From the NCBI GenBank assembly GCA_965202585.1, contig OZ241826.1, forward strand, positions 31,124,001 through 31,188,000: a stretch of 64,000 nucleotides of DNA. Direction: 5' to 3'. Positions 1,081-17,595 of the stretch are shown piece after piece (position 1 is the first letter of the stretch; the number at the start of each line of letters is the position of its first letter). The position numbers and the translations under genes were made by a program. Source of the DNA: Thalia democratica (lineage: Eukaryota). A model generated the notes under the pieces. That model made no database searches and had not been told where the DNA came from. It was given only the letters and a program-made list of their open reading frames with translations.

Positions 1081-2212
1081 TGAGTAAAAAAATTGTGTAT
1101 ATTTAATTTACGCTGATAATTCAATAGAAAATTTAAAAAACGTTAAAAAATATATTTTTGAGAGTAAACTATATTATCTAAGTTTTCTAAAAGTTATATG
1201 TCTTAAACACATATGTAAAATGTCAAAAAACTTTTAAACCTTTCATTTAATAAAAAGTACAATTAAAAAAGGCACACAATACCTGCACAAAATAATTTAA
1301 GTTCTATAGATGAAGAATTCAGTATTCTTTATAAAACTTTATTTGTCTTAACTTTAAATATCATGCTCGAGTAATTTTATGGCGATTCGACCAAAAAAAT
1401 TTGGCAGCTTTGGTGTACAATGTGCATTGTGCAGTGCACATTCAACGTTAGTATGTGGTGCTTAATAAAAAAGTACTAAGTTGTATTTATACATTTTTTT
1501 ATTTTAGTTGTGAAAAAGTTTAAAGGTTAAGTTAAAAAATTCAAAACTGGTGAGAATGCTGTTTTATATAGTATATTTTTTAAATATATTAAAAATAGAG
1601 CGTTTTATAATTGAACGAGAACTTTAAAAACTAAATAAATTGTATTCTAAATATGTGTTTTTAAATATTATTGTTTGCTTTTTCTTTATTTATTATTTAT
1701 ACATTTATTGAAGAGTAAGCATAGCATTAATTATTTTCGAACCAACAATCCCAGCTGACTGACTTTTTTGTAAATTTTGAACTTTTTGTCCAGAAACTAA
1801 AAAAAGCCATAAATGTTAAGTTGCAAGGTTTGGTTTGCTCACTCTGTTTAACATTTTCATCAACTAAACAGTTTCGTGGAATCATCACCAAATGTAAGTT
1901 TAATTTTGACTTTATTAAAGCATATAAGTTAGTTTTCTAGTAAGGTATAAATCAAAAACTAGATTCATAGTTAATATTGAACTTTTTTAATTCAGTATTC
2001 TAAAATTTTCCAAATTTTAGTCTCAACATAATATATTGGCTTAAAATAAAAGTTATTTCCATATTACAAGTACAAAATTACTTAAAAGTAGAGTTACTTA
2101 TATTTGAAACGCATCATTTTTTCTATTTGATATTTATTATTTAATTTAGCATGGATTATTGAAGACGTAATAATATAATGCATTTTACAAATAAAATAAA
2201 TTGGCATGCTTG

Positions 2213-2598
2213 CAGGGTGCACTTAACCTGGAATTCTGAAAAACCTAAAATTTGAAATTTTGAAAAAACCTAGAAATCCACCATTTAGGCTAAGATAAAT
2301 CTGGAAAATCTGGAAATTTAGTCGATGTTTACATATTAAGCAGTAAAATTTCAATTAGAAATAACTATTTATCTTATATTTAATAATTTTTGTCATTATC
2401 AAAGTATTTTTATAAAGTGGCTTTACATTCATTATCTTTTTAATTTTTTATCAACTATTTGAAAATGTCTAATAAACTATTTAGACATTTTTTTTTACCT
2501 TACACTTAACTTGAAACTTGAAAATGTGAACTTATAAAATCCTGTAAGAAATTCAAAAAATCTGGAAAAATATTTCTAAAAAATAAGTGGACACCCTG
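2213..2598. mobile_element. MITE with CAGGGTG...CACCCTG terminal inverted repeats
   Basis: TIRs at 2213 and 2592-2598. Internal AACCTGGAA/AAAAACCTG motifs are shared with copies at 3674-4100, 4380-4748 and 18518-18935. Confidence 0.7.
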
Positions 2599-3094
2599 AG
2601 CTTGGTCACTGATTTTGGTAAGAAATCCTTTAAATGAATGTTTAAGGATCTAGGTTGGATAATTAGCTTAGTTAATAATAACAAATATTGTATAACTTCA
2701 AAACTAAGTATTCAAACTAAAACTAAGATATTGTCCACAAAAAGTTATTCACAGTGCAGATACCTGCACATTTGCTAATTTTCATTTCAGTGATGTGTCT
2801 TACTGAATTAAGTATTAATTTTATATGTCATAAAGAATTAGTATGTCCTTTTAGCTTAAAAAATATTCATTATGAAAAAAAAAACATTTTAATCCTAGTA
2901 AACTATTCAATTCAACCAACAGTATTTATGCTAATAGTAAAGGCCAAAGTTTTAGGTTTTAATACTTACATTGTAATAAAACATTAATTATTTTTTGAAA
3001 ACTAGTGTTTTTTATTAGTTTTTCTTTGCTCATTAAAATAACTTTATTCACCAAAGGATTATTTATTTTAAGAATCATCATTATTTAGAAATTA

Positions 3095-3205
3095 AAGGCC
3101 TTTAAAGTTACATGCAGATAATTAAATAGAAAACTGAGAATTGCCTGGGATATACAATAACATGACTTGTTCTTATGGGGATTGTGACAACTCCATGTTA
3201 CAAAA
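3095..3205 (+). ncRNA. Candidate H/ACA snoRNA
   Basis: H-like ATACAA at 3152, 3' hairpin closed by AACATG/CATGTT, ACA at 3200; 5' hairpin weak; no target found. Confidence 0.3.
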
Positions 3206-3673
3206 ATCAAAATTTTTCACTTTTATTGCTTGGAAATTAATATAAAACTTTAAGTTGTTATTAAACTTATTTTAATCATATTAATAATTTTCAGATAGTG
3301 CCAAACAATAGAAATGAAGTCTAAGAACTCACTACCCCAGTTGCACCACAAGTTAGTATTACTTTTTTTACAATCATCTTTGTTATATTGACATAGAATG
3401 ATCTTGATATTCAATTTACATTGTTTTATACATTATTCAAACTTAAATATGCATCTAACATGGTTAATTTGATAGTTGTACAGTGTTTTGCAAGCAGGCT
3501 AAATCAGTTTTGTTTTATTTGCAAAATATCAGTTTTTTTTAATTTTTCTTTCTTGAAAATTTTAAAACTTCAGTATATGTCATTTCAAATGCTTGAAAAC
3601 TTAAAATAAATTGAGTTATTTTTATTTACCTAAGGTAAATCTTATTAAGATGTGAATTTATTTTTAAGTATTA

Positions 3674-4100
3674 ACATGGCTGCCAAAAAACCTGGAATCT
3701 GGAATTTGATAATTAAGATTAAAAAACCTGGAGTTAGATAATTTTTGTTTATTTTTTTTTGAATTTTGAACAAAAATCATTCAAAAACCTGGAATTTTGA
3801 ACAGTAGTCACTAAAAATTCTGGAAAAACCTGAGATTGTAAATAACTTTTACATGTTAAGTAGTAGAATTTAAATTTTACACAAAAAAATTATCATATAA
3901 ATGACATTTATTTGTCATCATTTAAGGTTTTGTATTAAAAAACTCATTTAAGTATCTTTTCAATGTTTTTATACCATTTAAATAGTTTTGTACCTTAATC
4001 TTTTTCAAACTAAAATAAACCTAAACATATACTTTTATAGACATGGAGGTTACTTTTTAAGTACTGGATAAAACTTTCAAAAAACCAGTGGCAACTCTTT
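3674..4100. mobile_element. Partial copy of the CAGGGTTG MITE family
   Basis: AAAAACCTGGAA motifs and CAGTGGCAACTC end. Confidence 0.55.
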
Positions 4101-4379
4101 TTAATCATTGATCATTTGGTCATTTTCCCCTTTTTATGTATACTGATATAAAGCAAAATTTTCTAAAGTAATTTGCTTTAGCATGCTTAAAGTTAGGAAG
4201 CTTATTTTTTTTATACTGTCTTTTTATGTGATTTTCCAGTGTTAAAAAATTTGACCAAGCAAAATTTCAAAACTTTCATTTTTGAGAGGTAGCAGATGCA
4301 CTCTAATGTACACATGTGACTAACAATAAACTAAATAATTTAAATATCAATCATCAACTTATTAAAGATCATTTTAAAA

Positions 4380-4748
4380 CAGGGTTGTTACTTAACCTGA
4401 AAACCTGGAAAAACCTGGAATTTTTATCAATTTTAACATGTTCAGTAGTAAAATTTTACTTGACACTAAAAATCTATTGCATAGATAAAATTTTTTTATA
4501 AAAAAAAAGATTTTAGTAGCTTTACAGTATCTTTTTAATGTAACTATTTTTTTTATACTATTTAACACAGATATCTTAATTTAACCTGAAAACCCATAAA
4601 AGCATGGAATTTGAGAAATTAAAAAAACCTAGAGTTTTAACAATTTTCACATGTTCAGTAGTAAAATTTTGATTTCACTCAAAACATTTATTATATAAAT
4701 AAATAAAAATTGTCTTCATCCATATTTTTTAAATGAGTGGCAACCCTG
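4380..4748. mobile_element. MITE CAGGGTTG...GGCAACCCTG
   Basis: TIRs CAGGGTTG (4380) and CAACCCTG (4741-4748); internal motifs as at 2213-2598. Confidence 0.7.
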
Positions 4749-4762
4749 CACATATCATTTTA

Positions 4763-4890
4763 GGCATGCATTTTGTTAAAACTTGAAACTTTTTCTATGA
4801 TTAATCAAGTGTAGCTTGTATGCAAAATTAAGATAATTCTGAAACCTGCTATAGCAGTGGTTTTCAAATTGCCAAAAAAATCATTGAAAT
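4763..4890 (+). ncRNA. Candidate H/ACA snoRNA
   Basis: 5' hairpin GCATGCA/TGTATGC with CTTGA/TCAAG upper stem, H box AAATTA, second hairpin TGAAACC..GGTTTTCA; no clear ACA box or target. Confidence 0.3.
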
Positions 4891-5085
4891 TTTAATAAAA
4901 TGCAGTAACTATTTTTCATTTAACAAAATAAAATTACAACAAACTAACATTGTCAAAATTAAAAAAAAAAATATTTTTTAGAATTGAAGACAAAATGAAA
5001 GGCTTTGCCCTTTAGAACACAAGGAGTTGTGGATAAATATTTTGTGGTTAGTTGTTAAAATTTATGCAAAAAGTTTTTTTTATGC

Positions 5086-5146
5086 AAATAATGATGACTT
5101 TGTGCACCACTCTTTTAAATAAACACCACTAATTCTAGTCTAAACT
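5086..5146 (+). pseudogene. Decayed C/D snoRNA relic (U32/snR40-like guide)
   Basis: C box ATGATGA at 5091; GTGCACCACT pairs with 18S GGUGGUGCAU; D'/D boxes degenerate (CTTT, CTAA). Confidence 0.35.
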
Positions 5147-5262
5147 CTTTTTTTTATTCAGATTACTGGTTCACTCTCAGCTGTGATGAAAGTGATGAAA
5201 GACAATTTCCTGTGGCTCTTTAAGGTATGTGAAATTTTTTTGAAATGACAAATTAATTTTAA

Positions 5263-5326
5263 AGCTTTGATGACAATTTAGAAGCGCTTGCATATACTAT
5301 TGATGACTTCTCTATCCCACTGAGCA
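5263..5326 (+). ncRNA. Box C/D snoRNA, orphan
   Basis: C TTGATGA 5267, internal C' TGATGA, D CTGA 5320, short GC/GC terminal stem; no rRNA target recognised. Confidence 0.65.
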
Positions 5327-5531
5327 TAATAAGAAATGTAACAGTTTTTAATACCTACTTATCATACATTAATATTCAAAACCTATATTTTACAGAAAAG
5401 AACAGCCCAATTACCAGACTAGAGCAAGGAAAGTGCAAAACTGTCAGTAGTTAGTTTTACCTTAATTTTTTCCTGAGTTTTATTTTATTTAGTAACAATA
5501 AATGGTTATTTGAGATTTAGAGATATTATAT

Positions 5532-5652
5532 TGCAAATAAGTTCCAAACCTTAAATTAATTAAGTATTTGGCGTTCCCTTTGCAAAAATTAAAAATCTTG
5601 GCTTGCTATGTGTTTTTCACCAGCTTAGTTGAGTTTAGTTGAGCCAACATAC
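5532..5652 (+). ncRNA. H/ACA snoRNA, SNORA10/snR37-like (28S psi2944 yeast equivalent), divergent 3' end
   Basis: 5' hairpin GCAAA/TTTGC with pocket AGTT + CGTTCCC pairing 28S GGGAACG-UG-AGCU; H box AAATTA; ACA at 5647. Confidence 0.7.
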
Positions 5653-5730
5653 AGCTTGTTTACATAAGAGGTTGCAGTAAAGGTGTAAAGGTTAGAAATA
5701 GTTAATCAGATATGAAAGTTTTTTAGTTAT

Positions 5731-5800
5731 AAACAATGATGAGAATAACTTCTGGTCCGTGTTTTTGACAACAAATGACAACATAAGAAGCTCTGATAAA
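5731..5800 (+). ncRNA. SNORD18: U18/snR18 C/D snoRNA (28S Am649 yeast equivalent)
   Basis: C ATGATGA 5736; guide TGGTCCGTGTTT complementary to 28S AAACACGGACCA followed by D' TTGA; D CTGA 5793. Confidence 0.85.
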
Positions 5801-5947
5801 ATAATAAAATTGAATAAATTTATGATAAATTTATTTATTTATTTTTTCAACACTATTTTCATTACAGAATCAACTGAGTCAGTTCCTTGTGTTCATCAAC
5901 TTCTCATAAAAAAGGTAGATGATGATATATTATAAAATAATACATTA

Positions 5948-6079
5948 TGTCCTCAAAAAAGCACCATTATAATACATATATTACTTGTGGTTGTCGAAAG
6001 GGACTAAATTAATTGTTATATTTGTGGGTGAGTTGGTAAATTTATGTATTTGCTTGACTCAAGAATATAACATACATTT
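5948..6079 (+). ncRNA. H/ACA snoRNA guiding 28S psi2865 (5' hairpin) and psi2923 (3' hairpin), yeast numbering
   Basis: Pockets AAAAAGC/TGTCG pair CGACG-UU-GCUUUUU; GTGGGTG/CAA pair UUG-UU-CACCCAC. Both pockets are 14 nt from box H (AAATTA) or ACA (6074). Confidence 0.8.
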
Positions 6080-6258
6080 CAATTTATAATACTAATACTT
6101 ATAATAAGCCTTCTACAATGAATTCATTTTAAATCCAAATATTTCTACAGAAGCTGAGCACTACAGAAGTGGATTCAAACTCTTCTCAAAGATTGAAAGT
6201 TTTAACTATGAGATACTAACTGGTGAGTATTGTATAGTGATTTTATAATATTTTCTAA

Positions 6259-6325
6259 AAGCAATGATGATGTTTTGATAGGGACAACTGAAATATTCTG
6301 TGATTATTTATCGTTTTCTGAGCTT
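6259..6325 (+). ncRNA. SNORD74: U74/snR64 C/D snoRNA (28S Cm2337 yeast equivalent)
   Basis: C 6264; GATAGGGACA-A-CTGA pairs 28S UGUCCCUAUC; D CTGA 6318; AAGC/GCTT stem. Confidence 0.85.
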
Positions 6326-6532
6326 ATAACTTCAAAGTTGATTTTTTTGCTCAAATTATGCTCAAATTTATGCTTAAACATAAATATTTTTATAGATCGC
6401 AATCAGAACAAACCATCACAAAACCGTAAAAAACATTGTAAAAAACCACATAAAACGAGATTGTGAGCAAGATGAAAAGTTGTTGTAAGTTTTTTTAGTT
6501 AATGCTACAGAGATTAAATTAAAATAAAGTTA

Positions 6533-6600
6533 ATTATATGATGAGATTAAAGGCATAGTTCACCTGAATTAATGGGATGACAACTTACTTTGCTGAATAA
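6533..6600 (+). ncRNA. SNORD77: U77/U80/snR60-like C/D snoRNA (28S Am817 yeast equivalent)
   Basis: C 6538; AGGCATAGTTCAC-CTGA pairs 28S GUGAACUAUGCCU; D CTGA 6593. Confidence 0.8.
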
Positions 6601-6760
6601 ACATATTGTATTGATAACAAGTTATAATTTTATATACAATGTACCAACTGTTGTTCATTTTCAGACATCTTCTCATGAAATCTTTTGATGTGACAAGACA
6701 AAAATGCCAACCTGTTCATTTTTGGTAAGTCTTGTCATGAGAATAATAACAATAATTTTA

Positions 6761-6853
6761 AGTAGCTGATGATGTTAACTTAATTCTGCCAAATGTATGT
6801 AATTTTTAGTAGGATTTGCAAATGATATGAACTACCGTTTTAAACTGAAGCTT
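6761..6853 (+). ncRNA. SNORD47: U47 C/D snoRNA (28S Cm3866 human equivalent)
   Basis: C CTGATGA 6766; ATTCTGCCAA-ATGT pairs 28S UUGGCAGAAU as in vertebrate U47 (GATTCTGCCAAATGA); D CTGA 6845. Confidence 0.75.
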
Positions 6854-7013
6854 CTTAAAACATATATCACTATTTTTTCATGTTTTTTTTTGTAAGCAAT
6901 CTTCAATACTAACTACTTCTAACAGGTATCCTGTACCCAAGGCCTGCATTTGTAGCATCAACTCTGGGCTCAATAGGTAAAAATGATTTATCAAATTTGT
7001 TAATATAGTAAAT

Positions 7014-7093
7014 TTAGTCACAAGATGATTTGAATAGTAACAGCAGCATTTTGCAATGTAGACCGTGATCTATCACCCTTTTCTGATGGCTAA
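7014..7093 (+). ncRNA. Box C/D snoRNA, predicted 28S target AGAGGGUGAUAG
   Basis: 7-bp terminal stem TTAGTCA/TGGCTAA, C-like AAGATGA, D CTGA 7083, guide CTATCACCCT. Confidence 0.6.
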
Positions 7094-7268
7094 AATTAAA
7101 TATTTATATTTAAGTTTTTTAATAAGTTACTAAATTGAATATTTTTAACAGCATATAAGACTCGGTGAATGCTTCTTAACAAGTTCAGAAGTTGTGACGT
7201 AGAAAGAAAACTTGTCTTCAAAGGTGAGATCATAGATTGTTATTAGAATATATTCTTAAGTTTAAATC

Positions 7269-7361
7269 AACTGCAATGATGATGTTTCCACGTTCGCAGT
7301 TTCCACTGAATACTTTTTAAGTAAATGACAGCGAAAATCTTCCTTGGATGTCTGAGCAGTT
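7269..7361 (+). ncRNA. SNORD14: U14 snoRNA copy 1
   Basis: Domain A CGTTCGCAGTTTCCA and domain B CTTCCTTGGATGT-CTGA (18S Cm414 yeast / Cm462 human); AACTGC/GCAGTT stem. Confidence 0.95.
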
Positions 7362-7579
7362 ATAGCATGCACTAATGTATAAGATAAAAAGTTAGTGGTT
7401 TATAAATTAAATAATGTAGTTTATAAATCAATTACAGATTGTTGGATAAAGCATTGTTGGAGCTACAGCTATCCTATCTGTTTGATGACTTAACTTCTCC
7501 CTCCCTACCCGACCTTTTATAAAAGTAGGTATAAATTTTAAACTTTTATTTAGTACATTAAATAATTTCTCTTTTAAAA

Positions 7580-7654
7580 AAGCATTGATGATAATTTCTG
7601 TCAATCCCCTGAAATGAGATTTTCCATGTTGAAAAATGCTAACTTTCTGAGCTT
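7580..7654 (+). ncRNA. SNORD110: SNORD110 (HBII-55)-like C/D snoRNA (18S Um1288 human equivalent), copy 1
   Basis: TCTGTCAATCCC-CTGA pairs 18S GGAUUGACAGA; C TTGATGA 7585; D 7647. Confidence 0.85.
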
Positions 7655-7851
7655 AAAAACTAAAATCTAATTAATTGTTTACTGTTTTACATCTTGTAAA
7701 CTAAATTAAATGCTGTTATATATGAAAACACAGATGCAGTAAGAAGTTGATGTTAAGACAGAACTGACGAATGGTCATTACTTCAAATAATCAATGAACC
7801 ACAGCATATGAGTGCCAGGTAAGACATTTTATATTTTGAAAAAAAAGTAAA

Positions 7852-7963
7852 CGCAAATAAGTTCCAAAGCTTTATTTAATTGAGTATTTGGCGTTCCCTT
7901 TGCGAAAATTAAAATTCTTGGCTTGCTATGTGTTTTTCACCAGCTTAAATGTGATCTACATAC
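7852..7963 (+). ncRNA. SNORA10/snR37-like H/ACA snoRNA, copy 2
   Basis: As 5532; H AAATTA, ACA 7958. The 3' pocket TTCTTGGC could pair 18S GCCAAGAA, but the spacing is non-canonical. Confidence 0.8.
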
Positions 7964-8157
7964 GTTGTCAATTGACATTTTATTACTAGAATTAATTTTT
8001 ATATTTATTCTTACTTGACCATTAAATCGAAAAAAGTTTTAATTGACCCCAACTTTTAGAATTTCCTTGTGTTTCTTCAGAGCAAGCATGAGTCCATCCC
8101 AGTTTTAATGTGAATTTAAATTATAAGTTAAAAAAATAAATTTTTTCAAGTACTATT

Positions 8158-8218
8158 AAACATGATAGAAAATTTTTGTATCTGATTTTACTGATGATAC
8201 ACCCAGCTCTCTGAAAAC
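8158..8218 (+). ncRNA. snR69-like C/D snoRNA (28S Cm2948 yeast equivalent), copy 1
   Basis: ACCCAGCTC-T-CTGA pairs 28S GAGCUGGGU; D' CTGA, C' CTGATGA; C box degenerate (ATGATAG). Confidence 0.7.
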
Positions 8219-8402
8219 TAATAAAAAAATCAGCTTTAAGAAAAAATTGTTAAATCATCAATGAAAAACCTTTTCTTTTTCAGATACCTGCCAGAAACCA
8301 CCAAAAAAGATCAAAGACATCAGAGCAGTTGTCCACAGTTTACTTTCAGAGGTAAGTATAATTTTATATTGTAATATGTACATTTATAATATTAATATAA
8401 AT

Positions 8403-8468
8403 TGTGAATGATGACTTCAATGTCGCCCCAGTCTGAATATATTATGACGACTGACTTGTTCTGAAACT
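8403..8468 (+). ncRNA. SNORD31: U31/snR67 C/D snoRNA (28S Gm2619 yeast equivalent), copy 1
   Basis: GTCGCCCCAGT-CTGA pairs 28S ACUGGGGCGGU; C 8408; D 8461. Confidence 0.85.
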
Positions 8469-8623
8469 AAATTTGAAATTGTTAAAAATGAAAACTTTTA
8501 CTTACATGTTTTTATTAAATTAAATTTTCAGATCCATTTTCTCAAACACCCAAAATGAAACAGAGTCATCATTAAAAATAGTAAGTTCTTGAATTGATAT
8601 TTTGTTATTTAGTCAAAATTTTT

Positions 8624-8750
8624 TGCTAAAATGATGAAAAACCTTGTGTATGAGTGAATCAGTTATTTGTCATTAAGCTAGAAATAGCTGAACCCAATGA
8701 CAAGGCTGTTTTGCTAAGATTTTAAATGGTTTATTACCAGTCTAATAGCA
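8624..8750 (+). ncRNA. Long orphan C/D RNA with internal GAAA-capped hairpin, copy 1 (D box CTAA)
   Basis: C ATGATGA 8631; GCTA/TAGC terminal stem; internal stem CAGTT..TTGTCATT..AGCTA-GAAA-TAGCT..AATGACAA..GGCTG; conserved in 3 copies. Confidence 0.65.
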
Positions 8751-8923
8751 TTTATTAAAGTTTTAAAGTATGTTAACTTGTAACAAATTAAAAAGCATAA
8801 CTTAATTACAGGCAGCAACTGATGATTTAAGATACTTACTCTAACCAGCATCAGTTTCCAACATTTGTGAAGGTTAGTATTTTGGTTGTTTACATTAATC
8901 AAATGTTTAAAAGTAATCAATAA

Positions 8924-9016
8924 AACTGCAATGATGATGTTTCCACGTTCGCAGTTTCCACTGAATACTTTTTAAGTAAATGACAGCGTAAATCTTCCTT
9001 GGATGTCTGAGCAGTT
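8924..9016 (+). ncRNA. SNORD14: U14 snoRNA copy 2
   Basis: Near-identical to 7269-7361. Confidence 0.95.
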
Positions 9017-9183
9017 ATAGTAAAACTAAACTTGAATTTTTTATATTTATGTACTGTTGAATGAATTAACTTATATTAAGCAGTTACTTTTAATTACAGA
9101 ATTTTGAGTGGTGCAGCTTGAAACTTCCTTTCCATATATAAACAAAGTGAGCTGCGTTTTAGTTTTATTTGATATAATAAACT

Positions 9184-9505: not shown

Positions 9506-9701
9506 AAGCTACTTATATATTGTAAACATACAAGTTTAACAATTCCAGTGTTTAAATGTTAAATATACTTTTTAGGTTTGAAGAAAATTTCTGACAAACG
9601 AGCACACATCAGCTTGAATCGGTGAATTAGAAAACAATGGATCATAATAGACAACAGGCTGGAAGGTGAGAATTAAAATTTGTTATACATTTAATTGTCA
9701 T

Positions 9702-9790
9702 AACACTCAATGATGATTGAAATATTTGTTATTATGAAAAACAAGGTTTTAATGCTGACATATTTTTCACCAAGATCGCTGACATGTGTT
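9702..9790 (+). ncRNA. SNORD24: U24/snR24 C/D snoRNA (28S Cm1437 and the 1449-1451 region)
   Basis: CACCAAGATCG-CTGA and AATATTTGTTAT guides as in U24; AACAC/GTGTT stem. Confidence 0.85.
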
Positions 9791-9954
9791 TTGCAATTAA
9801 GTTCACTTAAAAGTTTTTAACATAAGTATGCTTAATTTTGTATATTTTTACAGATCAACGGTTGGTAGCTCAGTTGGCTGATTAATCAAAGTTTTCCTAT
9901 GGTCAATATAAGCAAGTACGTAACCTCTTTATTATTATGTATTGTAATTCATTT

Positions 9955-10081
9955 TTCTAGTTCTTCAATTTCTCATTTATGTTGGAAGGATTCGCTAAAA
10001 TGATAAATAAAACGAAAGCTTTTACCAAGCCATCACCAACTTTTCTTGTGTTGTTTGATGGAAGTCTGCTTTTCGACATGT
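9955..10081 (+). ncRNA. Candidate H/ACA snoRNA, target unknown
   Basis: 3' hairpin CGAAAGC..CCATCA/TGATGG..GCTTTTCG followed by ACA 10076; H-like AAATGA; short 5' hairpin. Confidence 0.5.
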
Positions 10082-10382
10082 TTATATAAAAACAAAGAAA
10101 TATGTTATATATTTGACCGATAAAAATAAAGACTATGTACCCATTATTTTAGAGTCTAAATAGTTATACAACTTGAATAGATATATGACCAGTTTAATAA
10201 AAATTCCAGTATAAATTGACCATTTCTTGTTTTAAATATTGACTCCAGTTTTTTTAACAGTTAGTGGAGAACTACCGAACTAAGAAACCACCACCAGAAA
10301 AAAGTTTTGTTCAAAACAATTAAAAGGTTAGATTGTTGATTGTATTTGTTGTTATTGGAGCAATATTATTCATGTTACTAAT

Positions 10383-10475
10383 ACTGCAATGATGATGTTT
10401 CCACGTTCGCAGTTTCCACTGAATACTTTTTAAAAGTAAATGACAGCGAAAATCTTCCTTGGATGTCTGAGCAGT
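10383..10475 (+). ncRNA. SNORD14: U14 snoRNA copy 3
   Basis: Domains A and B intact. Confidence 0.95.
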
Positions 10476-10674
10476 TTTATATTTATATAAAAAGATTGCC
10501 ATTTACGAAAAACGTAGTTTAAATTAGAAGGCTATCATTATTTATAATTAATTATAGGAGCAATTTTGAAGCCACAACCCATGTTCTTCGTTATGATGAG
10601 ATCGCTACATCCCAAACAACTTCATACAAGAGTAAGTTTAACTTATAAAATATTTTTCTGTTAATGTTTCATCA

Positions 10675-10749
10675 AAGCAATGATGATATTTTCAGTCAAT
10701 CCCCTGAAATGAGATTTTTAATGTTGAAGATTGCTAACTTTCTGAGCTT
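10675..10749 (+). ncRNA. SNORD110: SNORD110-like copy 2
   Basis: GTCAATCCC-CTGA guide (one substitution, TCAGTC); C and D boxes intact. Confidence 0.8.
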
Positions 10750-11217
10750 AATTAAAACAAAATTGAAGTAACATTGTTTTATAAACTAACGAAGAAAAAA
10801 TTTATTACAGGCAAATACCATGATGCAATAATAACTGATTAATGCTGGTTTCACTTGAAGTCAAGAAAGAAAGGTAAATTTTAATTCTAGTTTTTATTAA
10901 TTATTAAATATATTAATATTTTTTTGCATTAATTAAGCCGACTAGTTTTCTTCTTGTATAGATTATTAGCGACATACGGTGCACACAGAAAATACAATAT
11001 AGAGCTTGAAAAATGAGAGATATGTAACTCTTCAAGGCTGATTTGTGACAATTTTATAATAATAACCATTAAAACTGACGATTTAAGTCAACATATTTTA
11101 TAATTAAAAAAATTTTTAATACTTACCAGATTTCTTTGAGAACAAACGCTTCAAATAATCAATGGACTACACAAACATAAGTATTAGGTAAGAAATTTTT
11201 CTTGAGAATAAAGTAAG

Positions 11218-11331
11218 CGCAAATAAGTTCCAAAGCTTTATTTAATTGAGTATTTGGCGTTCCCTTTGCGAAAATTAAAATTCTTGGCTTGCTATGTGTT
11301 TTTCACTTAATTTTAAATGTGAACTACATAC
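11218..11331 (+). ncRNA. SNORA10/snR37-like H/ACA copy 3
   Basis: 5' hairpin identical to 7852; 3' upper stem altered. Confidence 0.75.
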
Positions 11332-11520
11332 GTTGTCAATAGACATTTTATTGAATGTAATATTTTTAATATGTATATATTTATAACCTATGTTTGATTT
11401 TACAATAATTTTACAGAACACAGTAGGAAACCACCACTCGAAGTACTTGTTGTTGATTCATTTAGTTTCAAGGTGAGTTGCATTATTAAATTTTATTATA
11501 ATTTTTTTTTTAAATATCTT

Positions 11521-11580
11521 AAACATGATAGAAAATTTTTGTATCTGATTTCACTGACGATACACCCAGCTCTCTGAAAA
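11521..11580 (+). ncRNA. snR69-like C/D copy 2
   Basis: Near-identical to 8158-8218. Confidence 0.7.
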
Positions 11581-11759
11581 TTAAAAAAAAAAAACATTTT
11601 TAAGAAAAAATAATAAAATCATTGATTAAAAAGTTTTTCTGTTTCAGATACCTGCCAGCGACCACCAAATAAGATCAAACATGGCTGAGCAGTTATTCAC
11701 AGTTTACTTTCAGTGGTAAGTAAAATTTTATATTATAACATGTATATTTTTAATTAAAT

Positions 11760-11824
11760 TGTCAATGATGACTTCAATGTCGCCCCAGTCTGAATACAAC
11801 TGACGACTGACTTGTTCTGAAACT
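11760..11824 (+). ncRNA. SNORD31: U31 copy 2
   Basis: Same guide and boxes as 8403. Confidence 0.85.
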
Positions 11825-11982
11825 AAAATTTGAAATTGAAATAATATTTAAACTTTTATATACACTATTGAAAACAATATATTTTCAGGACTTTTCGTTC
11901 AAACGTCTATAGTGGAAACAAATCATCATTTAGAAAAAGTAAGTTTTTATATTACTACTTAATAATAAACTATTAACAAATA

Positions 11983-12108
11983 GCTAACATGATGTTAAAA
12001 CTTTGTGTATGAGTGAATCAGTTATTTGTCATCAAGCTAGAAATAGCTGAACCCAATGGCAAGGCTGTTTTGCTGAGATTTTAAATGGTTTATTACCAGT
12101 CTGATAGC
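11983..12108 (+). ncRNA. Long orphan C/D RNA copy 2
   Basis: C ATGATGT, D CTGA 12101, same internal hairpin. Confidence 0.7.
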
Positions 12109-12284
12109 ATTAAATAAAAGTTCATAATTTTTTTAAATTATTTAATTATTAAAGCATTATATAATTACAGGTTACCAGTGGTTGAAAACATTGAACTTAA
12201 TGAAGCAAATGTTGTCATTCCCAACTTTAAAAAAGGTCAGTTTCTAAAATATTTTTGTGTAAACAATTTTATCATATTTTGTAC

Positions 12285-12379
12285 AACTGCAATGATGATG
12301 TTTCCACGTTCGCAGTTTCCACTGAATACTTTTTAAAAGTAAATGACAGCGAAAATCTTCCTTGGATGTCTGAGCAGTT
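12285..12379 (+). ncRNA. SNORD14: U14 snoRNA copy 4
   Basis: Domains A and B intact. Confidence 0.95.
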
Positions 12380-12527
12380 ATATATTTAATTAATGAGAAT
12401 TATTAAGTTATACCCATAAAAACTCAAAATTAATACTATCATTTTTACAGGCTGAAAGTTGATGCCACAAAATCACAAACAGAAAGTAAGGCAAAATTTA
12501 CAGTAGTTTTTCTAAATATAAACATTT

Positions 12528-12597
12528 AAGCAATGATGATTTTGTCTCGTTCGTCAGATAAATTTTGTTGACTCATTCTCTAAGAAGTCCTGAGCTT
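12528..12597 (+). ncRNA. SNORD61: U61 C/D snoRNA, dual guide (18S Um1442 and Am1383 human equivalents), copy 1
   Basis: CTCTAAGAAGT-C-CTGA pairs ACUUCUUAGAG; GTCTCGTTCGT-CAGA pairs ACGAACGAGAC. Confidence 0.85.
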
Positions 12598-12787
12598 TAC
12601 ATAAATCAGTTATTAATATTACTTGTAGTTTATATTGAAATAAACCTAATAACTATTTTTATAGATATTTCCATCTAGCTTTACCATCTGATCTTTGAAG
12701 AAACAGTTGGTGTTCAACGGAAGAAAAAAAGAATGTTGATGGTTAGAACAGTTTTAGAATGTATTGTTAAAAATTGTAACTTAGTTA

Positions 12788-12857
12788 AAAAAATGATAAT
12801 AATTACTTCTGGTCCGTGTTTTTGACAACAAATGATAACATAAGAAGCTCTGATAAA
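12788..12857 (+). ncRNA. SNORD18: U18 copy 2
   Basis: Same guide as 5731; C box ATGATAA. Confidence 0.8.
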
Positions 12858-13051
12858 TTTAGTTTACAACAGCTTTCATTAGGTTAATTATATTTGTGTA
12901 TCAATAAATTGATTTAATTGAAAATATTTTCAGGTATGACACATTGGCAACTACCACCCAAAACTCAAGCCATCCTCTCAAAATTACACAGTGAATAGTC
13001 TGAGGTAAGTAGCATATGGTAACTTAAAGTTTATAAACTGAATATGAATAT

Positions 13052-13184
13052 GAACTCAAAAAAGCACCATTATAATGCATATATTACTAGTGGTTGTCGA
13101 AAGGGACTAAATTAATTGTTATATTTGTGGGTGAGTTTGTAAATGTTCATGTATTTATTTTACTCAAGAATATAACATACATTT
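13052..13184 (+). ncRNA. psi2865/psi2923 H/ACA snoRNA copy 2
   Basis: Near-identical to 5948-6079; the 5' lower-stem arm is mutated (GAACTC vs GTCCTC). Confidence 0.7.
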
Positions 13185-13342
13185 GCATGTCAATGTTATT
13201 AAAATTTTATTCACCTAATTTAAAATAGTAACTTATTAAAATTAGTTTTTGTAGCGTTAGAAGTTTGATGATAAAGCAGAAACCCTGAAGTAATCTCTCA
13301 AATTGTTAGTTTTCAACCTTTTCTATTTTAAACTTGAGTTAG

Positions 13343-13406
13343 AGCTATGATGATGTTTTGATAGGGACAACTGATATTCTGTGATTATTTATCGTTTTCT
13401 GAGCTT
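13343..13406 (+). ncRNA. SNORD74: U74 copy 2
   Basis: Near-identical to 6259-6325. Confidence 0.85.
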
Positions 13407-13581
13407 ATGTTAATTCACAGTATTTAATGATAGTTTATATATAAAGTGCAATAAAAACATAATTTTACAGTGACGAAATTTGGATACAATTATTGCTGTT
13501 TCCATACAAAAGCAACAATATTACAGGTAAGAACTGTTGTGTTCATTAAGTATTCAATATTTATTATATTAAAATAGTTTT

Positions 13582-13648
13582 ATAGTATGATGAGATTAAA
13601 GGCATAGTTCAACTGAATTAATGGGATGACAACTTACTTTACTAATTA
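13582..13648 (+). ncRNA. SNORD77: U77-like copy 2 with degenerate D box (CTAA)
   Basis: Guide GGCATAGTTCA retained; D box mutated. Confidence 0.6.
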
Positions 13649-13821
13649 AAATTTAAACTTAATTCCATTTGGTGCTTTCTTTTTTATAAAAAGATCAATG
13701 TTTTTTTTTTACAGATTGCCATTCTAATTGATGAGGTCAAATTTTGAGGCGTCAATATCTCACCAAATTGTCAAGTCACCACAAAATTGTAAGTTCGTTT
13801 TGAATAAATGTTTCTAAAAAT

Positions 13822-13933
13822 TGCAAACAAGTTCCAAGGCTTTATTTAATTGAGTATTTGGCGTTCCCTTTGCGAAAATAAAAATTCTTGGCTTGCTATG
13901 TGTTTTTCACCAGCTTAAATGTGATCTACATAC
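13822..13933 (+). ncRNA. SNORA10/snR37-like H/ACA copy 4
   Basis: Near-identical to 7852-7963. Confidence 0.8.
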
Positions 13934-14115
13934 GTTGTCAATTGACATTTCATTAAATGAATTTTTTTTTTATGCCAATAAGGATAATTTTATTATTTTT
14001 CTAACAGTTAATTCTTTTTCAGAATCAATAAAGGAATACAGATCTTCAATTAGTCTGTACTGTACAGAAACAGCAGGTAAATGTAATACTTTTTTTTACA
14101 AAAGTTCTTATGTTA

Positions 14116-14251
14116 GGCATTGGTATTGAGTTTTAGCTATTTTTGTTGGTAAATAGATAAAAATTATCCGATGCTATAGAAATATCAGAGAGAAATGTGT
14201 AATTGTTGCTTATAATATGAGTGAATAATATAAGGGATCTCTCATACATTT
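14116..14251 (+). ncRNA. H/ACA snoRNA guiding 18S psi1244 (SNORA36/snR36 site) and psi1692 (SNORA70 site), human numbering
   Basis: TTGAGT/AATTA pair UAAUU-UG-ACUCAA, 14 nt from H box ATAGAA (14176). TGTGTA/AAGGG pair CCCUU-UG-UACACA, 14 nt from ACA (14246). Confidence 0.8.
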
Positions 14252-14412
14252 GTATTTAATAATATTTAGTTTTTCTTTGAAAGTTTCCAAAATTTAATGA
14301 ATTTTTTTTTTTTAGACGCACGTTGAATGTGAATAATCATAAATCACAACGACTCCTTGAAACCAGCTTCCAAAGTAAGAAGATTTTTTTTATATTTATG
14401 CATTAAAAATAC

Positions 14413-14487
14413 AAGCAATGATGATATTTTCTGTCAATCCCCTGAATTGAGATTTTTCATGTTGAAAATTGCTAACTTCCTGAGCTT
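14413..14487 (+). ncRNA. SNORD110: SNORD110-like copy 3
   Basis: Guide and boxes intact. Confidence 0.85.
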
Positions 14488-14668
14488 AGAAATAATAAAA
14501 ATAATTTTATAGACAATAAGTATAATATTGATTACAACTAACTAAACTCAGAAATATTTTTAGGACATCAGGCTTACCTCAAGGAAACTGAGTGGTCTGA
14601 AAAAAGAATTGTATTATATACAACTTCGGTTAGTTGTGATTCAATTTTTATTTTATACATTTGATAAT

Positions 14669-14734
14669 TGTCAATGATGACTTCAATGTCGCCCCAGTCT
14701 GAATATGTTATGACGACTGACTTGTTCTGAAACT
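14669..14734 (+). ncRNA. SNORD31: U31 copy 3
   Basis: Guide and boxes intact. Confidence 0.85.
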
Positions 14735-14887
14735 AAGTAAAATAACTGATTGAAAACTTATTTTATTAAATAATATTTATTAAGTAAAATTTTCAGATCC
14801 TTACCCTCGGATATTCAAAATGAAATACAATCGATTAAATCAAGTAAGTTTTATATTGATAACTATATATTAGATAATTGATAAGAA

Positions 14888-15011
14888 GCTAAAATGATGT
14901 TGACAATTATAATGAGTGAATCGGTTATTTGTCATTAAGCTAGAAATAGCTGAACCCAATGGCAAGGCTGTTTTGCTAAGATTTTAAATGGTTTTTTACT
15001 AGTCTGATAGC
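14888..15011 (+). ncRNA. Long orphan C/D RNA copy 3
   Basis: Same internal hairpin; D CTGA 15004. Confidence 0.7.
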
Positions 15012-15192
15012 AATAAATAAAAGTCATAATATATTCAAAGTTAAAATAATTATTAAAAGCATAACTTAATTACAGGCTGCAACTAATTGATTGAGGAAAC
15101 TTACTGTAACCACCATCAGATTTCAACTTTTATTATTAGGTTAGTATTTTTGTACTATTTTCATACTATTCAAACTTGAGCAAATATTTTAA

Positions 15193-15287
15193 AACTGCAA
15201 TGATGATGTTTCCACGTTCGCAGTTTCCACTGAATACTTAAAAAAAGTAAATGACAGCGAAAATCTTCCTTGGATGTCTGAGCAGTT
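15193..15287 (+). ncRNA. SNORD14: U14 snoRNA copy 5
   Basis: Domains A and B intact. Confidence 0.95.
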
Positions 15288-15467
15288 TTATATTAAGTTA
15301 TAATATTGAGTATTTTTAAGTTAAACTTTGAACATACCTTGAACCAAAACTTGAAAATTAAAAATATTATTTTTACAGGCTGAACGACTACTGCAAGTTG
15401 ATGCTACAAAATCACAAACAAAAAGTAAGTCGTATTTTTATTATAATTTAAAAAAATAAATAATTTT

Positions 15468-15538
15468 AAAGCAATGATGATTCTGTCTCGTTCGTCAGAT
15501 AAATTTTGTTGACCTTTTCTCTAAGAAGTCCTGAGTTT
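15468..15538 (+). ncRNA. SNORD61: U61 dual-guide copy 2
   Basis: Both guides conserved relative to 12528. Confidence 0.85.
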
Positions 15539-15716
15539 AATTAATTAATTTATAGTTTAACTTGCCAAATTGGACAATCTTGGTTTACAATGATTAAATT
15601 ATTTGTAGATAGTAATGCTGGCTAGGTGTGCGGTTTTGATGTACAAGCTTATCATTCTAATGGTCAAGTATACAAAGGTTATTTGATTATTTGTTAGTTT
15701 AACTTTATTTATAAAT

Positions 15717-15791
15717 AAGCATTGATGATAATTTCTGTCAATCCCCAGAAATGAGATTTTTTCATGTTGACAATTGCTAACTACCTGAGCT
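15717..15791 (+). ncRNA. SNORD110: SNORD110-like copy 4
   Basis: Guide intact, D' CAGA. Confidence 0.8.
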
Positions 15792-15973
15792 CAAAAACGA
15801 TTAAAAAATTTGATAAATTTTAAAACACGCTAAATATAAATTTAGTTGATACATATGATTAAATTTAATATATTTACAGCACAGATGGATATCATGGTTA
15901 CTCTGTGGAAAACATGAAAAAGGGAACACCAGGTAAATTTTAATTTAGATCTTGTTACATTATATAAATTATT

Positions 15974-16038
15974 TGTCAATGATGACTTCAATGTCGCCCC
16001 AGTCTGAATACAACTGACGACTGACTTGTTCTGAAATT
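15974..16038 (+). ncRNA. SNORD31: U31 copy 4
   Basis: Identical core to 11760. Confidence 0.85.
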
Positions 16039-16223
16039 AAATTTATAACAATAAAAATTAAGATTGATTTTGCACGTTGATAAAATATTTTTTGTTTTCA
16101 GGTATCTTTTTCTGTACAACAAATGATCACCTGTTGAGACAAATATCAAAACACGGCCCACCAGTGCCGAGGTAAATAATTTACCTTTTATACAATGATT
16201 ATATAACTGATATTTAAAATAAT

Positions 16224-16294
16224 TTACAATGATGATTATTTTATACCATCTTTCGACTGAATACAATAAATGTCGAAGACTACTATCTGACACA
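16224..16294 (+). ncRNA. U51/U32/snR39-59-like C/D snoRNA (28S Am807 yeast equivalent)
   Basis: ACCATCTTTCG-A-CTGA pairs 28S CGAAAGAUGGU; C 16229; D 16287. Confidence 0.8.
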
Positions 16295-16452
16295 AAATTT
16301 TTTAATTCAAATGCATAATGAATTTAATTTTCAACAATTAATTAAATTAAATTTTTACAGATCTACAACGTTTGTCGCAAATCCCCATGACACTAGAAGA
16401 TAATAAACATTCAGGTAAGCAATTAAATATAATAAAATAATAAAAGTATAAT

Positions 16453-16525
16453 ACCATAATGATGAGAAATTCCACGAGACATAATGAATAATATTATTGC
16501 TGAGTTGGGTGAGATCCTGAATGGT
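16453..16525 (+). ncRNA. Box C/D snoRNA, weak 18S target prediction
   Basis: ACCA/TGGT stem, C 16459, D 16517; GTTGGGTGAG could pair 18S CUCACCCGGC with wobbles. Confidence 0.6.
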
Positions 16526-16689
16526 TAAATAATTAAATATATTGATTTTTCAATTTAAATTTGATTAGATAATATATTGTTCTTATTTTTACAGATTGCT
16601 GTTGCAACTTGGTACATCTACCTTGGGCGTGTGTACTAAAAAGTAAGTTGTTGATATATCATATTGTATAGTTTAATTAAAAATATAAA

Positions 16690-16817
16690 CGCAAATAAGT
16701 TCCAAAGCTTTATTCAATTGAGTATTTGGCGTTCCCTTTGCGAAAATTAATCAGTTGAGAGCTGTGTAATTGTCAAGTAGATAATGCTTGGATGATATAA
16801 GGATCTCTCAAACATTT
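16690..16817 (+). ncRNA. Chimeric H/ACA snoRNA: SNORA10-like 5' hairpin plus SNORA70-site 3' hairpin
   Basis: 16690-16750 matches 7852-7912; 16751-16817 is homologous to 14185-14251 (GAGAG..TGTGTAATTGT..ATAAGGATCTCTCA-ACA). Confidence 0.75.
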
Positions 16818-17595
16818 TTGAACTAGTAAATTAAGTATATTAGTTTACAATTTCCTGTTTTTACTGAATTTTTAAAACGCAGATGCAGCCACAAGGAGTC
16901 CTCAGCACATGAAGGCGCCTGACGGTTGTTCAACAGATCTCTTAGTTAAATATTTGTTTGTGTGTGAAAATAAACTTGAAAAACTTCGAAACTGTTTGTG
17001 TTGTTTAAAAAATAGTTTACTTTAATGTTTATATTAAGCGCTTTTAAAGAAGTTCAATTGTATCCAAATATAAAGGTCTTCACGTTTGTATAGTAATCTA
17101 AATGATAAGATATCAAAATTCATTCATATTTTGAATACCCTATTGACTTGTAGTGTCGTTTGCGCATATTATAAACCAGTATGTCAGTTTTGTTATATAC
17201 TAAATTATTATCTGTACTGATAGAGCAATGTTTGATAATAAGGTTAAGATTTCTTAGACTAAGTATATGCTTCGCATCAGATTTATTGTAAAAATTCCCT
17301 TCAATAAAAAGTCAATCGCAAGTCGTAAAGTTTTTGAATTTTTTGGATATTTGCATAAATGCGCACCACGTAATACAAATAGGTAGGCAGAACAGAGTAC
17401 TCACACGCGAAAAAGAGCACACCATAAAAATATTTCATGCCTGGTTGTGCTATACCAAAAAAGCACTTTGCCAGTTATATTTACAAACTTCTTTGTAATA
17501 CTTTATGTAAGTTTCAAAAGTATGTGTAAGACCTTTTTGCTCTTCATCATGAACTCTAATATAGTAAAATTTGTTTGGTGACCACCGAATTTTAT

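Follow-up and report, generated by a model that had tools for sequence, protein, structure and literature searches.

A large array of snoRNA-like elements in the predicted introns of a probable non-coding host gene of Thalia democratica

The locus analyzed here, within a window of 64,000 nucleotides (the whole stretch of DNA examined) from the AT-rich genome of a marine animal, raises the question of whether a dense succession of small guide RNA-like elements constitutes a single non-coding host gene. A sequence-only reading had proposed such a gene, starting at position 1370 and carrying at least 43 intronic snoRNAs. Analysis of boxes, folds and Rfam matches identifies 44 snoRNA-like elements at 5263-16817, all on the plus strand, so that the claimed number is reached, but these elements represent only about 22 families, half of the copy number, and about five copies are damaged, with degenerate boxes (U18 copy 2, snR60-like copy 2, the element at 9430, D4 copy 1 and SNORD110-like copy 4). 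By box and fold reading, 34 elements belong to the box C/D class, 9 to the H/ACA class and 1 is unclassified. The snoRNA array lies within 5162-16990 (+, about 11.7 kb; hereafter, the core host). The second haplotype, a separately assembled haplotig (G000:C112), is about 87% identical and collinear with the window over 918-17881; the 44 elements are all present there, in unchanged order.

The Rfam scan that had been proposed as a check yields matches in the array on the plus strand only, in the range 5731-16298. Both copies of SNORD18, SNORD83, all four copies of SNORD31 and one SNORD61 score at or above the gathering threshold; the five SNORD14 copies (58-62 bits vs 64), the second SNORD61 and SNORD24 fall slightly below it; and the matches to the SNORD110, snR60/Z15, Me28S-Cm2645, Me28S-Am982 and SNORA63 models are weaker. 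Box reading of the C/D elements reveals canonical C, D and D' boxes and terminal stems. The guides were compared with the species' own rRNA (L003), and significance was estimated against shuffled guides. The targets are C416 (U14), U1385 (U61), U1237 (SNORD110-like) and A22 (element 'c') in 18S rRNA, and A821 (U18), A983, A993, C1632 (U24), G2863 (U31) and U3188 (H/ACA family D1) in 28S rRNA; shuffled guides reach most of these target scores in at most 5% of cases, and the matches of U14, U18, U24, U31, U61 and others fall at canonical rRNA positions.

The five SNORD14 (U14) copies are located at 7271-7359, 8926-9014, 10384-10474, 12287-12377 and 15195-15285 (59.7, 59.3, 62.3, 62.3 and 58.1 bits, respectively); copy 1 contains a 14-bp guide to 18S C416, which is the same in copy 2, and a domain A match near 18S position 84. 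The SNORD18 (U18) copies (5731-5800 and 12788-12857) score 53 and 50.6 bits against a gathering score of 41; the former carries a 12-bp guide to 28S A821, and the latter has the C box ATGATAA and is only 85.7% identical to its haplotig counterpart. SNORD31 (U31) is represented at 8401-8470, 11758-11826, 14667-14736 and 15972-16040 (41.5, 42.3, 44 and 40 bits; gathering score 40), with a D' guide to 28S G2863 in copy 1. The two SNORD61 (U61) copies (12530-12597, 43.2 bits, and 15471-15538, 40.2 bits; gathering score 43) possess a 13-bp D guide and a 14-bp guide, respectively, to 18S U1385. Single copies of SNORD83 (7017-7091; 48.5 bits, gathering score 35) and SNORD24 (U24, 9706-9788; 36.3 bits, gathering score 41) were detected, the latter with a 14-bp D guide to 28S C1632 that is matched by 0 of 200 shuffles.

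Among the elements with weaker matches, the SNORD110-like family (7580-7654, 10675-10750, 14413-14487 and 15717-15791) shows weak Rfam similarity in copies 1 to 3, and copies 2 to 4 are assigned by repeat family; copy 1 has an 11-bp D' guide to 18S U1237, the guide of copy 2 is altered, and boxes are present in copies 3 and 4, the D' box of copy 4 being CAGA. The first snR60/Z15-like element (6529-6600) contains a 13-bp D' guide to 28S A993, with a score reached in 0 of 200 shuffles; the second (13578-13644) has lost the D box and keeps this guide intact. The Me28S-Cm2645-like elements at 6259-6325 (28 bits, boxes present) and 13341-13411 (34.5 bits) are both below the gathering score, and the Me28S-Am982-like element (16224-16298; a weak match of 30 bits) has a 12-bp D' guide to 28S A983 (p ~0.02). 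Two further C/D families were recognized from repeats or boxes. The long (about 130 nt) family D4 (8624-8760, with the D box CTAA, 11983-12119 and 14886-15012; repeat family, boxes) matches 28S G1236 weakly in copy 1 and over 15 bp, including G-U pairs, in copy 3 (p ~0.005). Family D9 includes copy 1 at 8150-8218 (boxes, with a degenerate C box; haplotig identity 100%), whose guide pairs with 28S C3192 over 12 bp with one mismatch (p ~0.07), and copy 2 at 11513-11581 (boxes), for which the depth in DNA runs is about 14 times that of a single copy, with many different flanks, and which therefore belongs to a family that is multi-copy genome-wide. The remaining C/D elements are 'a' (5263-5337; single copy, C box, D box, terminal stem; haplotig identity 100%), for which a search of the species' own rRNA gave no significant match; 'b' (6765-6852; single copy, boxes, terminal stem; haplotig identity 98.9%); 'c' (9180-9262; boxes, 6-bp terminal stem), which is SNORD27-like by target, with an 11-bp D guide to 18S A22 (p ~0.035); 'h' (16453-16526; boxes, 5-bp terminal stem), with a D guide near 18S U1212 (16 bp with one mismatch, p ~0.005); and the degenerate C/D-like 'd' (9430-9512), with no clear D box and a haplotig identity of just 88%, which is possibly a pseudogene.

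The H/ACA elements adopt predicted hairpin-hinge-hairpin-ACA folds. Family D1 (SNORA63-like) has four copies, at 5533-5666 (repeat families D1/D3 and fold; the 3' hairpin is diverged), 7851-7978 (fold, H box, ACA), 11215-11346 (a weak SNORA63 match of 31.5 bits, and fold) and 13823-13950 (repeat family and fold); the 5' pocket of copy 2 fits 28S U3188 with 8+4 bp, which is equalled in 9 of 300 shuffles. Family D10 consists of copy 1 at 5947-6079 (hairpin, H box, hairpin, ACA), with weak Rfam matches to ceN82/psi28S-3316 and no significant pocket target on the species' own rRNA, and copy 2 at 13049-13182 (repeat family, fold). Element 'f' (10920-11055; single copy, haplotig identity 95.6%) consists of two hairpins joined by an ACAGAA hinge and ends in an ACA tail; 'g' (14100-14262) has two hairpins and an ACA tail; and the fold at 16690-16817 combines a D1-type 5' hairpin with a 'g'-like 3' hairpin, repeat family D3 spanning its 5' half only. 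The unclassified conserved intronic RNA 'e' (9985-10082; haplotig identity 99%), an H/ACA-like single long hairpin with an ACA end, has no match in an Rfam search; its copies adjoin U24 at C1:74.79 Mb.

The exon chain was built from the best-scoring acceptor/donor pair between consecutive elements, with additional hand curation. It includes 44 predicted exons of 29-108 nt with AG/GT borders on the plus strand: 5162-5224, 5396-5442, 5868-5914, 6151-6222, 6396-6484, 6665-6724, 6926-6976, 7152-7223, 7438-7524, 7734-7818 and 8081-8109 (exons 1-11); 8284-8351, 8532-8580, 8812-8872, 9100-9146, 9330-9377, 9576-9665, 9854-9915, 10261-10326, 10558-10631, 10811-10873 and 11130-11187 (12-22); 11417-11472, 11648-11715, 11889-11938, 12171-12235, 12451-12485, 12665-12741, 12934-13004, 13229-13289, 13471-13526, 13715-13788 and 14023-14076 (23-33); and 14316-14374, 14564-14628, 14797-14843, 15076-15139, 15379-15424, 15609-15677, 15880-15932, 16102-16171, 16361-16414, 16595-16642 and 16883-~16990 (34-44). 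The proposed rule of one snoRNA per intron holds for 42 of the 43 predicted introns (168-425 nt) and fails for intron 5443-5867, which contains both H/ACA D1 copy 1 and U18 copy 1; this regularity is not wholly independent of the model because the exon borders were partly picked between already known snoRNAs. The near-constant distance from snoRNA to acceptor, also claimed earlier, is confirmed: the median from the snoRNA 3' end is 67 nt (interquartile range 61-74), for each of the 34 C/D elements this distance is between 51 and 93 nt, and the part of the spacer on the 3' side amounts to a fraction of 0.62 (sd 0.05), compared with about 0.5 (sd 0.29) expected under a uniform distribution. The predicted exons have a GC content of 36.6% vs 18.1% in the intron spacers. 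These features support a predicted non-coding, multi-exon host with a guide in each intron and with the spacing expected for splicing-coupled release.

Thus, the locus is probably a host gene of the UHG/GAS5 type, unusually large, with a candidate poly(A) signal, AATAAA, at 16969-16974 in the last predicted exon, the only one within 16881-17100. A less likely arrangement, which nevertheless deserves consideration, is that a genuine, spliced array is divided over the 11.7 kb into at least two adjacent non-coding host units with their own promoters and poly(A) sites. AATAAA also occurs inside some predicted exons (e.g., 14023-14076 and 16361-16414), and the array consists of a mosaic of duplicated blocks, each of which could have brought regulatory sequence with it; against this, the exon/intron spacing is continuous over 5162-16883, with no gap beyond ordinary intron length and no promoter-sized intergenic stretch, and all elements are on the same strand. 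The stretch 1370-5161 (+) might likewise belong elsewhere, being tied to the array solely by plausible splice sites. It has no recognizable Rfam-like snoRNA, which corrects the earlier reading of a snoRNA host from 1370 onward. This stretch contains putative long, repeat-filled introns and GC-richer islands with GT/AG borders kept between the haplotypes, with candidate exons near 1390-1449, 1508-1549, 1872-1893, 3295-3352 and 4981-5046, and is best described as a putative, uncertain upstream portion of the host.

Comparison of the window with the haplotig shows 94.8% identity for snoRNAs, 89.4% for exons and 85.2% for spacers; the respective values for an old paralogous array at another location on the same chromosome (C53) are 88%, 55% and 62%. 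The predicted splice dinucleotides are kept in 84 of 87 cases in the haplotig, vs 75% of control dinucleotides (p = 7e-8), and in 33 of 55 cases in the paralogous array, vs 30% (p = 3e-6). This pattern indicates that selection acts on the snoRNAs and splice sites rather than on exon sequence, and it speaks for genuine splicing. It is hard to reconcile with endo- or exonucleolytic cutting of the elements from an unspliced polycistronic precursor, an organization found in plants, yeast clusters and trypanosomatids (PMC2780460), in which the apparent exons would be spacers. Given also that the sharp GC split falls exactly at the predicted borders and that the snoRNA-acceptor distance is tightly constrained, such processing appears improbable here. 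RNA-library contigs of a relative, from marine metatranscriptomes, overlap U14 (15184-15286, copy 5), the long C/D RNA (12008-12108, D4 copy 2) and also two exons; because their flanks look like diverged intron, these contigs would represent unspliced RNA or DNA carry-over.

Still less probable is a decayed protein-coding gene kept as a snoRNA carrier, or one that still encodes a small protein. The last exon is more conserved between the haplotypes (16883-16960) than the other exons, but the 2.7-kb spliced model contains 47-58 stops per frame and a longest ATG-initiated ORF of 61 aa, no ORF of at least 130 aa is present on either strand in the array part of the window, and the low exon identity to the paralogues also argues against coding. 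Least probable is false expansion or collapse of repeats during assembly: many paralogous copies do reside inside 12 kb, and short-read unitigs break at repeats, but the copies have distinct flanks and, in many cases, also diverge within the element, the haplotig is collinear, and neighboring elements are bridged by window-identical unitigs (11802-12037, 12353-12779, 13108-13376, 14678-14953, 15506-15752 and 16007-16253) from DNA runs that may derive from the assembly individual.

The elements, boxes, folds, guide-rRNA complementarity and non-coding nature are evident at the sequence level, and from these we infer transcription as one unit, a start site, splicing, and snoRNA accumulation and release. 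Under the single-host reading, RNA polymerase II would make one precursor in which some 44 small non-coding exons alternate with introns of about 170-260 nt. Each intron would hold one C/D or H/ACA snoRNA, with about 45 nt between the donor and the snoRNA and about 67 nt between the snoRNA and the acceptor. During splicing, the snoRNA would be bound by core snoRNP proteins, and debranching followed by exonuclease trimming would reduce the intron to the protected snoRNA, leaving the spliced exon RNA as a by-product. The released RNAs would direct 2'-O-methylation and pseudouridylation to sites in 18S and 28S rRNA, and U14 would additionally act in 18S processing. The 44 copies of about 22 families probably arose by repeated duplication of multi-intron blocks, and the array is one of several paralogous arrays in the genome.

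Fungi, flies and mammals also possess non-coding snoRNA hosts of this type (PMC2780460, PMC11014333, PMC8789076). The interpretation offered by the sequence-only reading is, overall, partly supported: its description of the array as several-fold larger than the classic hosts is valid with respect to GAS5 and SNHG1, but ignores human SNHG14, a larger non-coding host in which each SNORD116 and SNORD115 copy resides in its own intron (PMC8789076), and block duplication accounts for roughly half of the element count. The array thus appears to be a very large example of an already known gene type.

The array core (5162-16990, plus strand) lies in DNA with a GC content of about 26% throughout the window (G000:C1:31,124,001-31,188,000 within the 802-Mb assembly). 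An Rfam scan, which the sequence-only reading had proposed as a check, yields matches on the plus strand only, all within 5731-16298. Two copies of U18 (SNORD18), SNORD83, four copies of U31 (SNORD31) and one of U61 (SNORD61) reach the gathering threshold; reporting by E-value adds, below the cut-off, five copies of U14 (SNORD14; 58-62 bits with the cut-off at 64), a second SNORD61 and U24 (SNORD24). Weak matches are found to the models for SNORD110/U2-30, snR60/Z15, Me28S-Cm2645, Me28S-Am982, SNORA63 and ceN82. Combined with box reading and folding of the H/ACA candidates, the scan gives 44 elements in 5263-16817, namely 34 C/D, 9 H/ACA and one unclassified, which fall into about 22 families; the earlier count of at least 43 intronic snoRNAs is thereby borne out.

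Most of the C/D elements (29-30 of 34) contain a C box (RUGAUGA), a D box (CUGA) and a terminal stem. Five C/D copies have one degenerate box each and may be dying. Minimum free energy folds of the H/ACA families D1 and D10, the elements 'f' and 'g', and a D1/g hybrid of two families at 16690, which is one of the nine H/ACA elements, all display the hairpin-H box (ANANNA)-hairpin-ACA layout, in which the ACA lies three nucleotides before the 3' end. The unclassified element 'e' (9985-10082) fits this layout poorly, has no clean C/D layout either, and is without an Rfam match. It is 99% identical between the two haplotypes and accompanies U24 both in a tandem repeat at C1:74.79 Mb and at 75.02 Mb.

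The predicted host comprises 44 exons of 29-108 nt (2.7 kb in total) and 43 introns of 168-425 nt. Exons were modeled as the best-scoring acceptor-donor pair between neighboring elements, with some corrected by hand. In several gaps, the automatic picks were too short or misplaced and were replaced; for example, the pick at 15556-15625 was rejected for 15609-15677, which has conserved borders and restores normal spacing. Exactly one element is present in 42 of the 43 predicted introns, so that the one-snoRNA-per-intron rule of the sequence-only reading holds with a single exception, the intron 5443-5867, where D1.1 and U18.1 reside together. The near-constant distance to the acceptor that it also noted is apparent as well: the snoRNA-to-acceptor distance is 51-93 nt for all 34 C/D elements (the overall median is 67 nt, and that from donor to snoRNA 43 nt). 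This is the range described in other organisms as favorable for coupling snoRNP assembly to splicing (PMC2780460).

The predicted exons are richer in GC than the intron spacers (36.6% vs 18.1%), and their description as tiny and non-coding agrees with the spliced 2.7-kb model, which contains 47-58 stops per frame and a longest ATG-initiated ORF of 61 amino acids. The entire 64-kb window contains only three ORFs of at least 130 amino acids, all located past 42 kb and none with a Pfam match. A lone AATAAA, at 16969, is in the last predicted exon. The GC-rich last-exon segment 16883-16960 varies far less between haplotypes than the remaining exons do, and could have a role in 3' end formation, encode a short ORF or form a structured element.

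The upstream part of the locus is less well defined. The sequence-only reading placed the host from 1370 onwards, but a permissive Rfam scan of 1200-5700 detects only noise and no credible snoRNA upstream of 5263. The start at 1370 is no more than a plausible guess: a conserved stretch at 1340-1480 is associated with a TATAAAA motif at about 1330 and has no clear pyrimidine run. Vertebrate hosts typically have a 5'TOP start and a spliced RNA that decays rapidly. The long putative upstream introns are filled with repeated short AACCTGGAA-type elements with inverted ends, resembling MITEs (2200-2600, 3680-3850 and 4380-4660). Just before the array, a short predicted intron (5047-5161) is nearly unchanged between haplotypes; it lacks a D box but has a perfect C box and a pair of octamer-like motifs, ATGCAAA(T), and may represent a regulatory element or else a snoRNA that has died.

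Guide targets were sought in the rRNA of the species itself. The rDNA was located by the conserved 3' end of 18S, one unit (L003, G000:C79:26001-35900) was fetched, and its 18S (389-2196 in L003), 5.8S and 28S (2754-6384) genes were delimited by Rfam. Segments immediately 5' of every D or D' box were compared with these rRNAs, with 200 shuffles per guide as control; in a C/D guide, an antisense match of at least 10 nt ends beside D/D', the target nucleotide being the one paired to the fifth position. Ten families contain such guides. In 18S, clear matches in canonical geometry link U14 to C416 (14 bp), with an additional domain A match near position 84, and U61, the SNORD110-like family, 'c' and 'h' to U1385, U1237, A22 and the vicinity of U1212, respectively. 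In 28S, the same geometry is observed for U18 (A821), the Am982-like (A983) and snR60-like (A993) families, U24 (C1632) and U31 (G2863). Borderline matches link the long C/D family D4 to 28S G1236 and the C/D family D9 to 28S C3192. The simple D/D' guide search reveals no significant rRNA target for 'a', 'b', SNORD83 and the Cm2645-like family. For pseudouridylation pockets, the H/ACA families D1 and D10 were searched. The 5' pocket of D1 fits 28S U3188 by 8+4 bp at a distance of 14 nt to the H box, where 14-16 nt between the U and the H or ACA box is the proper spacing; 9 of 300 shuffles reach this fit, which is in accord with the weak SNORA63 match of this family. D10 yields no significant target.

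The rDNA repeat itself is about 15.5 kb long and, judging by the count of 18S 3' ends, is present in some 280 units. It also includes genes for U2 snRNA (L003 6972-7167), U5 snRNA (7249-7363) and 5S rRNA (9141-9259), which follow 28S in the same orientation and are therefore amplified along with the rDNA.

On contig C112 (stretches L001/L002), the locus is present a second time, collinear over its whole extent and about 87% identical; over 17 kb, the divergence between the two is about 13%, and in the intron spacers 15%. Such divergence implies either very high heterozygosity or a very recent duplication that gave rise to C112. Both versions are found at equal depth in the DNA runs of the species, which favors their being alleles, that is, two haplotypes. 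The allelic comparison yields a graded pattern, with 94.8% identity in the snoRNAs, 89.4% in the exons and 85.2% in the remaining intron sequence. Of the 87 predicted splice dinucleotides, 84 are the same in both versions, vs 75% of the other spacer AG/GT (p = 7e-8); among the three exceptions, one reflects a shifted alignment around a structural difference. A structural difference between the alleles is seen opposite window positions 12400-12450, where the haplotig contains a 3'-half fragment of U24 (guide and D box) within sequence that forms an exon/intron border in the window.

Paralogous arrays are encoded elsewhere in the same genome, at C1:39.33 Mb (with the haplotig C53), C1:43.69, C1:74.79 and C1:98.06 Mb, and U14 copies are present at C4:55.2 Mb. 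Like the window array, these arrays contain U14, U18, U31, SNORD83, U61, Am982-like and Cm2645-like elements on one strand and with the same spacing, but their family complements differ (e.g., SNORD16-like and Afu_300/snoR77Y-like elements in C53). The first 2.5 kb of the window array is collinear with C53, a much older paralog, and long collinear blocks are common to both. Over the aligned regions, the snoRNAs are 88% identical, the exons 55% and the spacers 62%, so that the C53 exons are essentially unrelated in sequence to those of the window; splice dinucleotides are kept in 33 of 55 aligned cases vs 30% of controls (p = 3e-6). Freely drifting exons combined with retained splice sites and payload are what characterizes a non-coding snoRNA host. 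Two of the other loci have organizations of their own: at C1:74,790,000-74,797,000, a unit of about 2.4 kb (long C/D, U14, 'c', U24, 'e') is repeated at least three times, and at C4:55.19-55.27 Mb, on another chromosome, four U14 copies lie 20-30 kb apart.

Within the window array, the repeat families have 2-5 copies, and repeat analysis identifies recurring periods of about 1300, 2905, 3360 and 7050 nt, indicating that the array grew by duplication of multi-intron blocks. For example, the blocks D1-D9-U31-D4-U14, U31-D4-U14-U61 and U18-D10-Cm2645-like-snR60-like each occur twice. The second D9 copy (11513-11601) has a depth of about 1000 in the DNA runs vs about 75 in the adjoining single-copy sequence, and dozens of contigs carry it with differing flanks, which indicates that this element is multi-copy across the genome; D9 copies are found in the other arrays too.

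A query of sequence runs with the whole array matched only two DNA runs of the species, and a U14 query matched two marine metatranscriptome runs. The metatranscriptome contigs belong to a relative (90-97% identity over 35-100 nt) and overlap U14, the long C/D RNA, the C/D element 'h' and two exons. For two of these contigs, the match begins at an exon border, as expected of spliced RNA; alignment of the loose ends led to rejection of this reading, given that one end is similar to the intron that precedes the exon in the window itself and the alignment of the other is not significant. The contigs from the relative's RNA library thus appear unspliced and are not evidence for splicing. Two exact-pattern scans of metagenome contigs, for the core of the long C/D RNA and for the U14 domain, identified no relatives.

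Among known hosts, GAS5 and SNHG1 contain roughly 8-10 snoRNAs each. Drosophila has seven Uhg lncRNAs that are non-coding hosts of the UHG type (PMC11014333), and UHG-like genes are known from Neurospora (PMC2780460). Like vertebrate UHG, GAS5 and SNHG1, and the fly and fungal hosts, the window array is multi-exon, without coding capacity, with essentially one guide for rRNA modification per intron, a set snoRNA-to-splice-site distance, and conserved snoRNAs amid drifting exons (PMC2780460; PMC11014333). It differs in its load of 44 copies from about 22 families, with C/D and H/ACA mixed within 11.7 kb, in its very short introns, and in having arisen in large part by recent block duplication. 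The other potential parallel is with orphan arrays. Human SNHG14, a non-coding gene in which tandem copies of orphan families (SNORD116/SNORD115) amount to dozens of snoRNAs at one per intron, and MEG8 (SNORD113/114) are similarly long non-coding hosts that expanded by tandem duplication, with copies arising and dying out (PMC8789076). These hosts, however, carry one or two orphan, brain-expressed, imprinted families without rRNA targets and span far more DNA, whereas the window array consists of mixed families, most with clear rRNA targets, rather than tandem copies of one family lacking them.

The locus is probably an extreme example of the known UHG/GAS5 kind. The observation made from sequence is confirmed overall and its interpretation partly supported; we infer a single transcript, its start, its splicing and the accumulation of the snoRNAs. 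That one Pol II transcript gives rise to 44 snoRNPs of about 22 guide families, making this the largest known host of canonical rRNA guides, is a tentative and rather doubtful proposition. The locus stands out in that one compact predicted gene contains so many canonical rRNA guides of such diversity, and in that several such arrays are present in one genome. The mechanism is textbook, and the interest is accordingly comparative rather than conceptual; a literature search for snoRNA hosts in cnidarians found no report.

Should RNA data confirm the prediction, no other host known to us would carry as many ordinary guides for rRNA modification. The locus is a compact natural experiment: it comprises duplicated exon-intron modules that differ in age, a pair of strongly diverged haplotypes and an old paralog, all of which show selection on snoRNAs and splice sites and not on exon sequence. 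It would also provide a natural system for studying guide dosage, birth and death of copies, and hybridization, as in the D1/g hybrid. The presence of at least four further arrays in the genome bears on how snoRNA repertoires are organized and expand beyond vertebrates, flies and fungi: if the prediction holds, much of the snoRNA repertoire of this lineage would reside in a few fast-duplicating non-coding genes, not in scattered protein-coding hosts.
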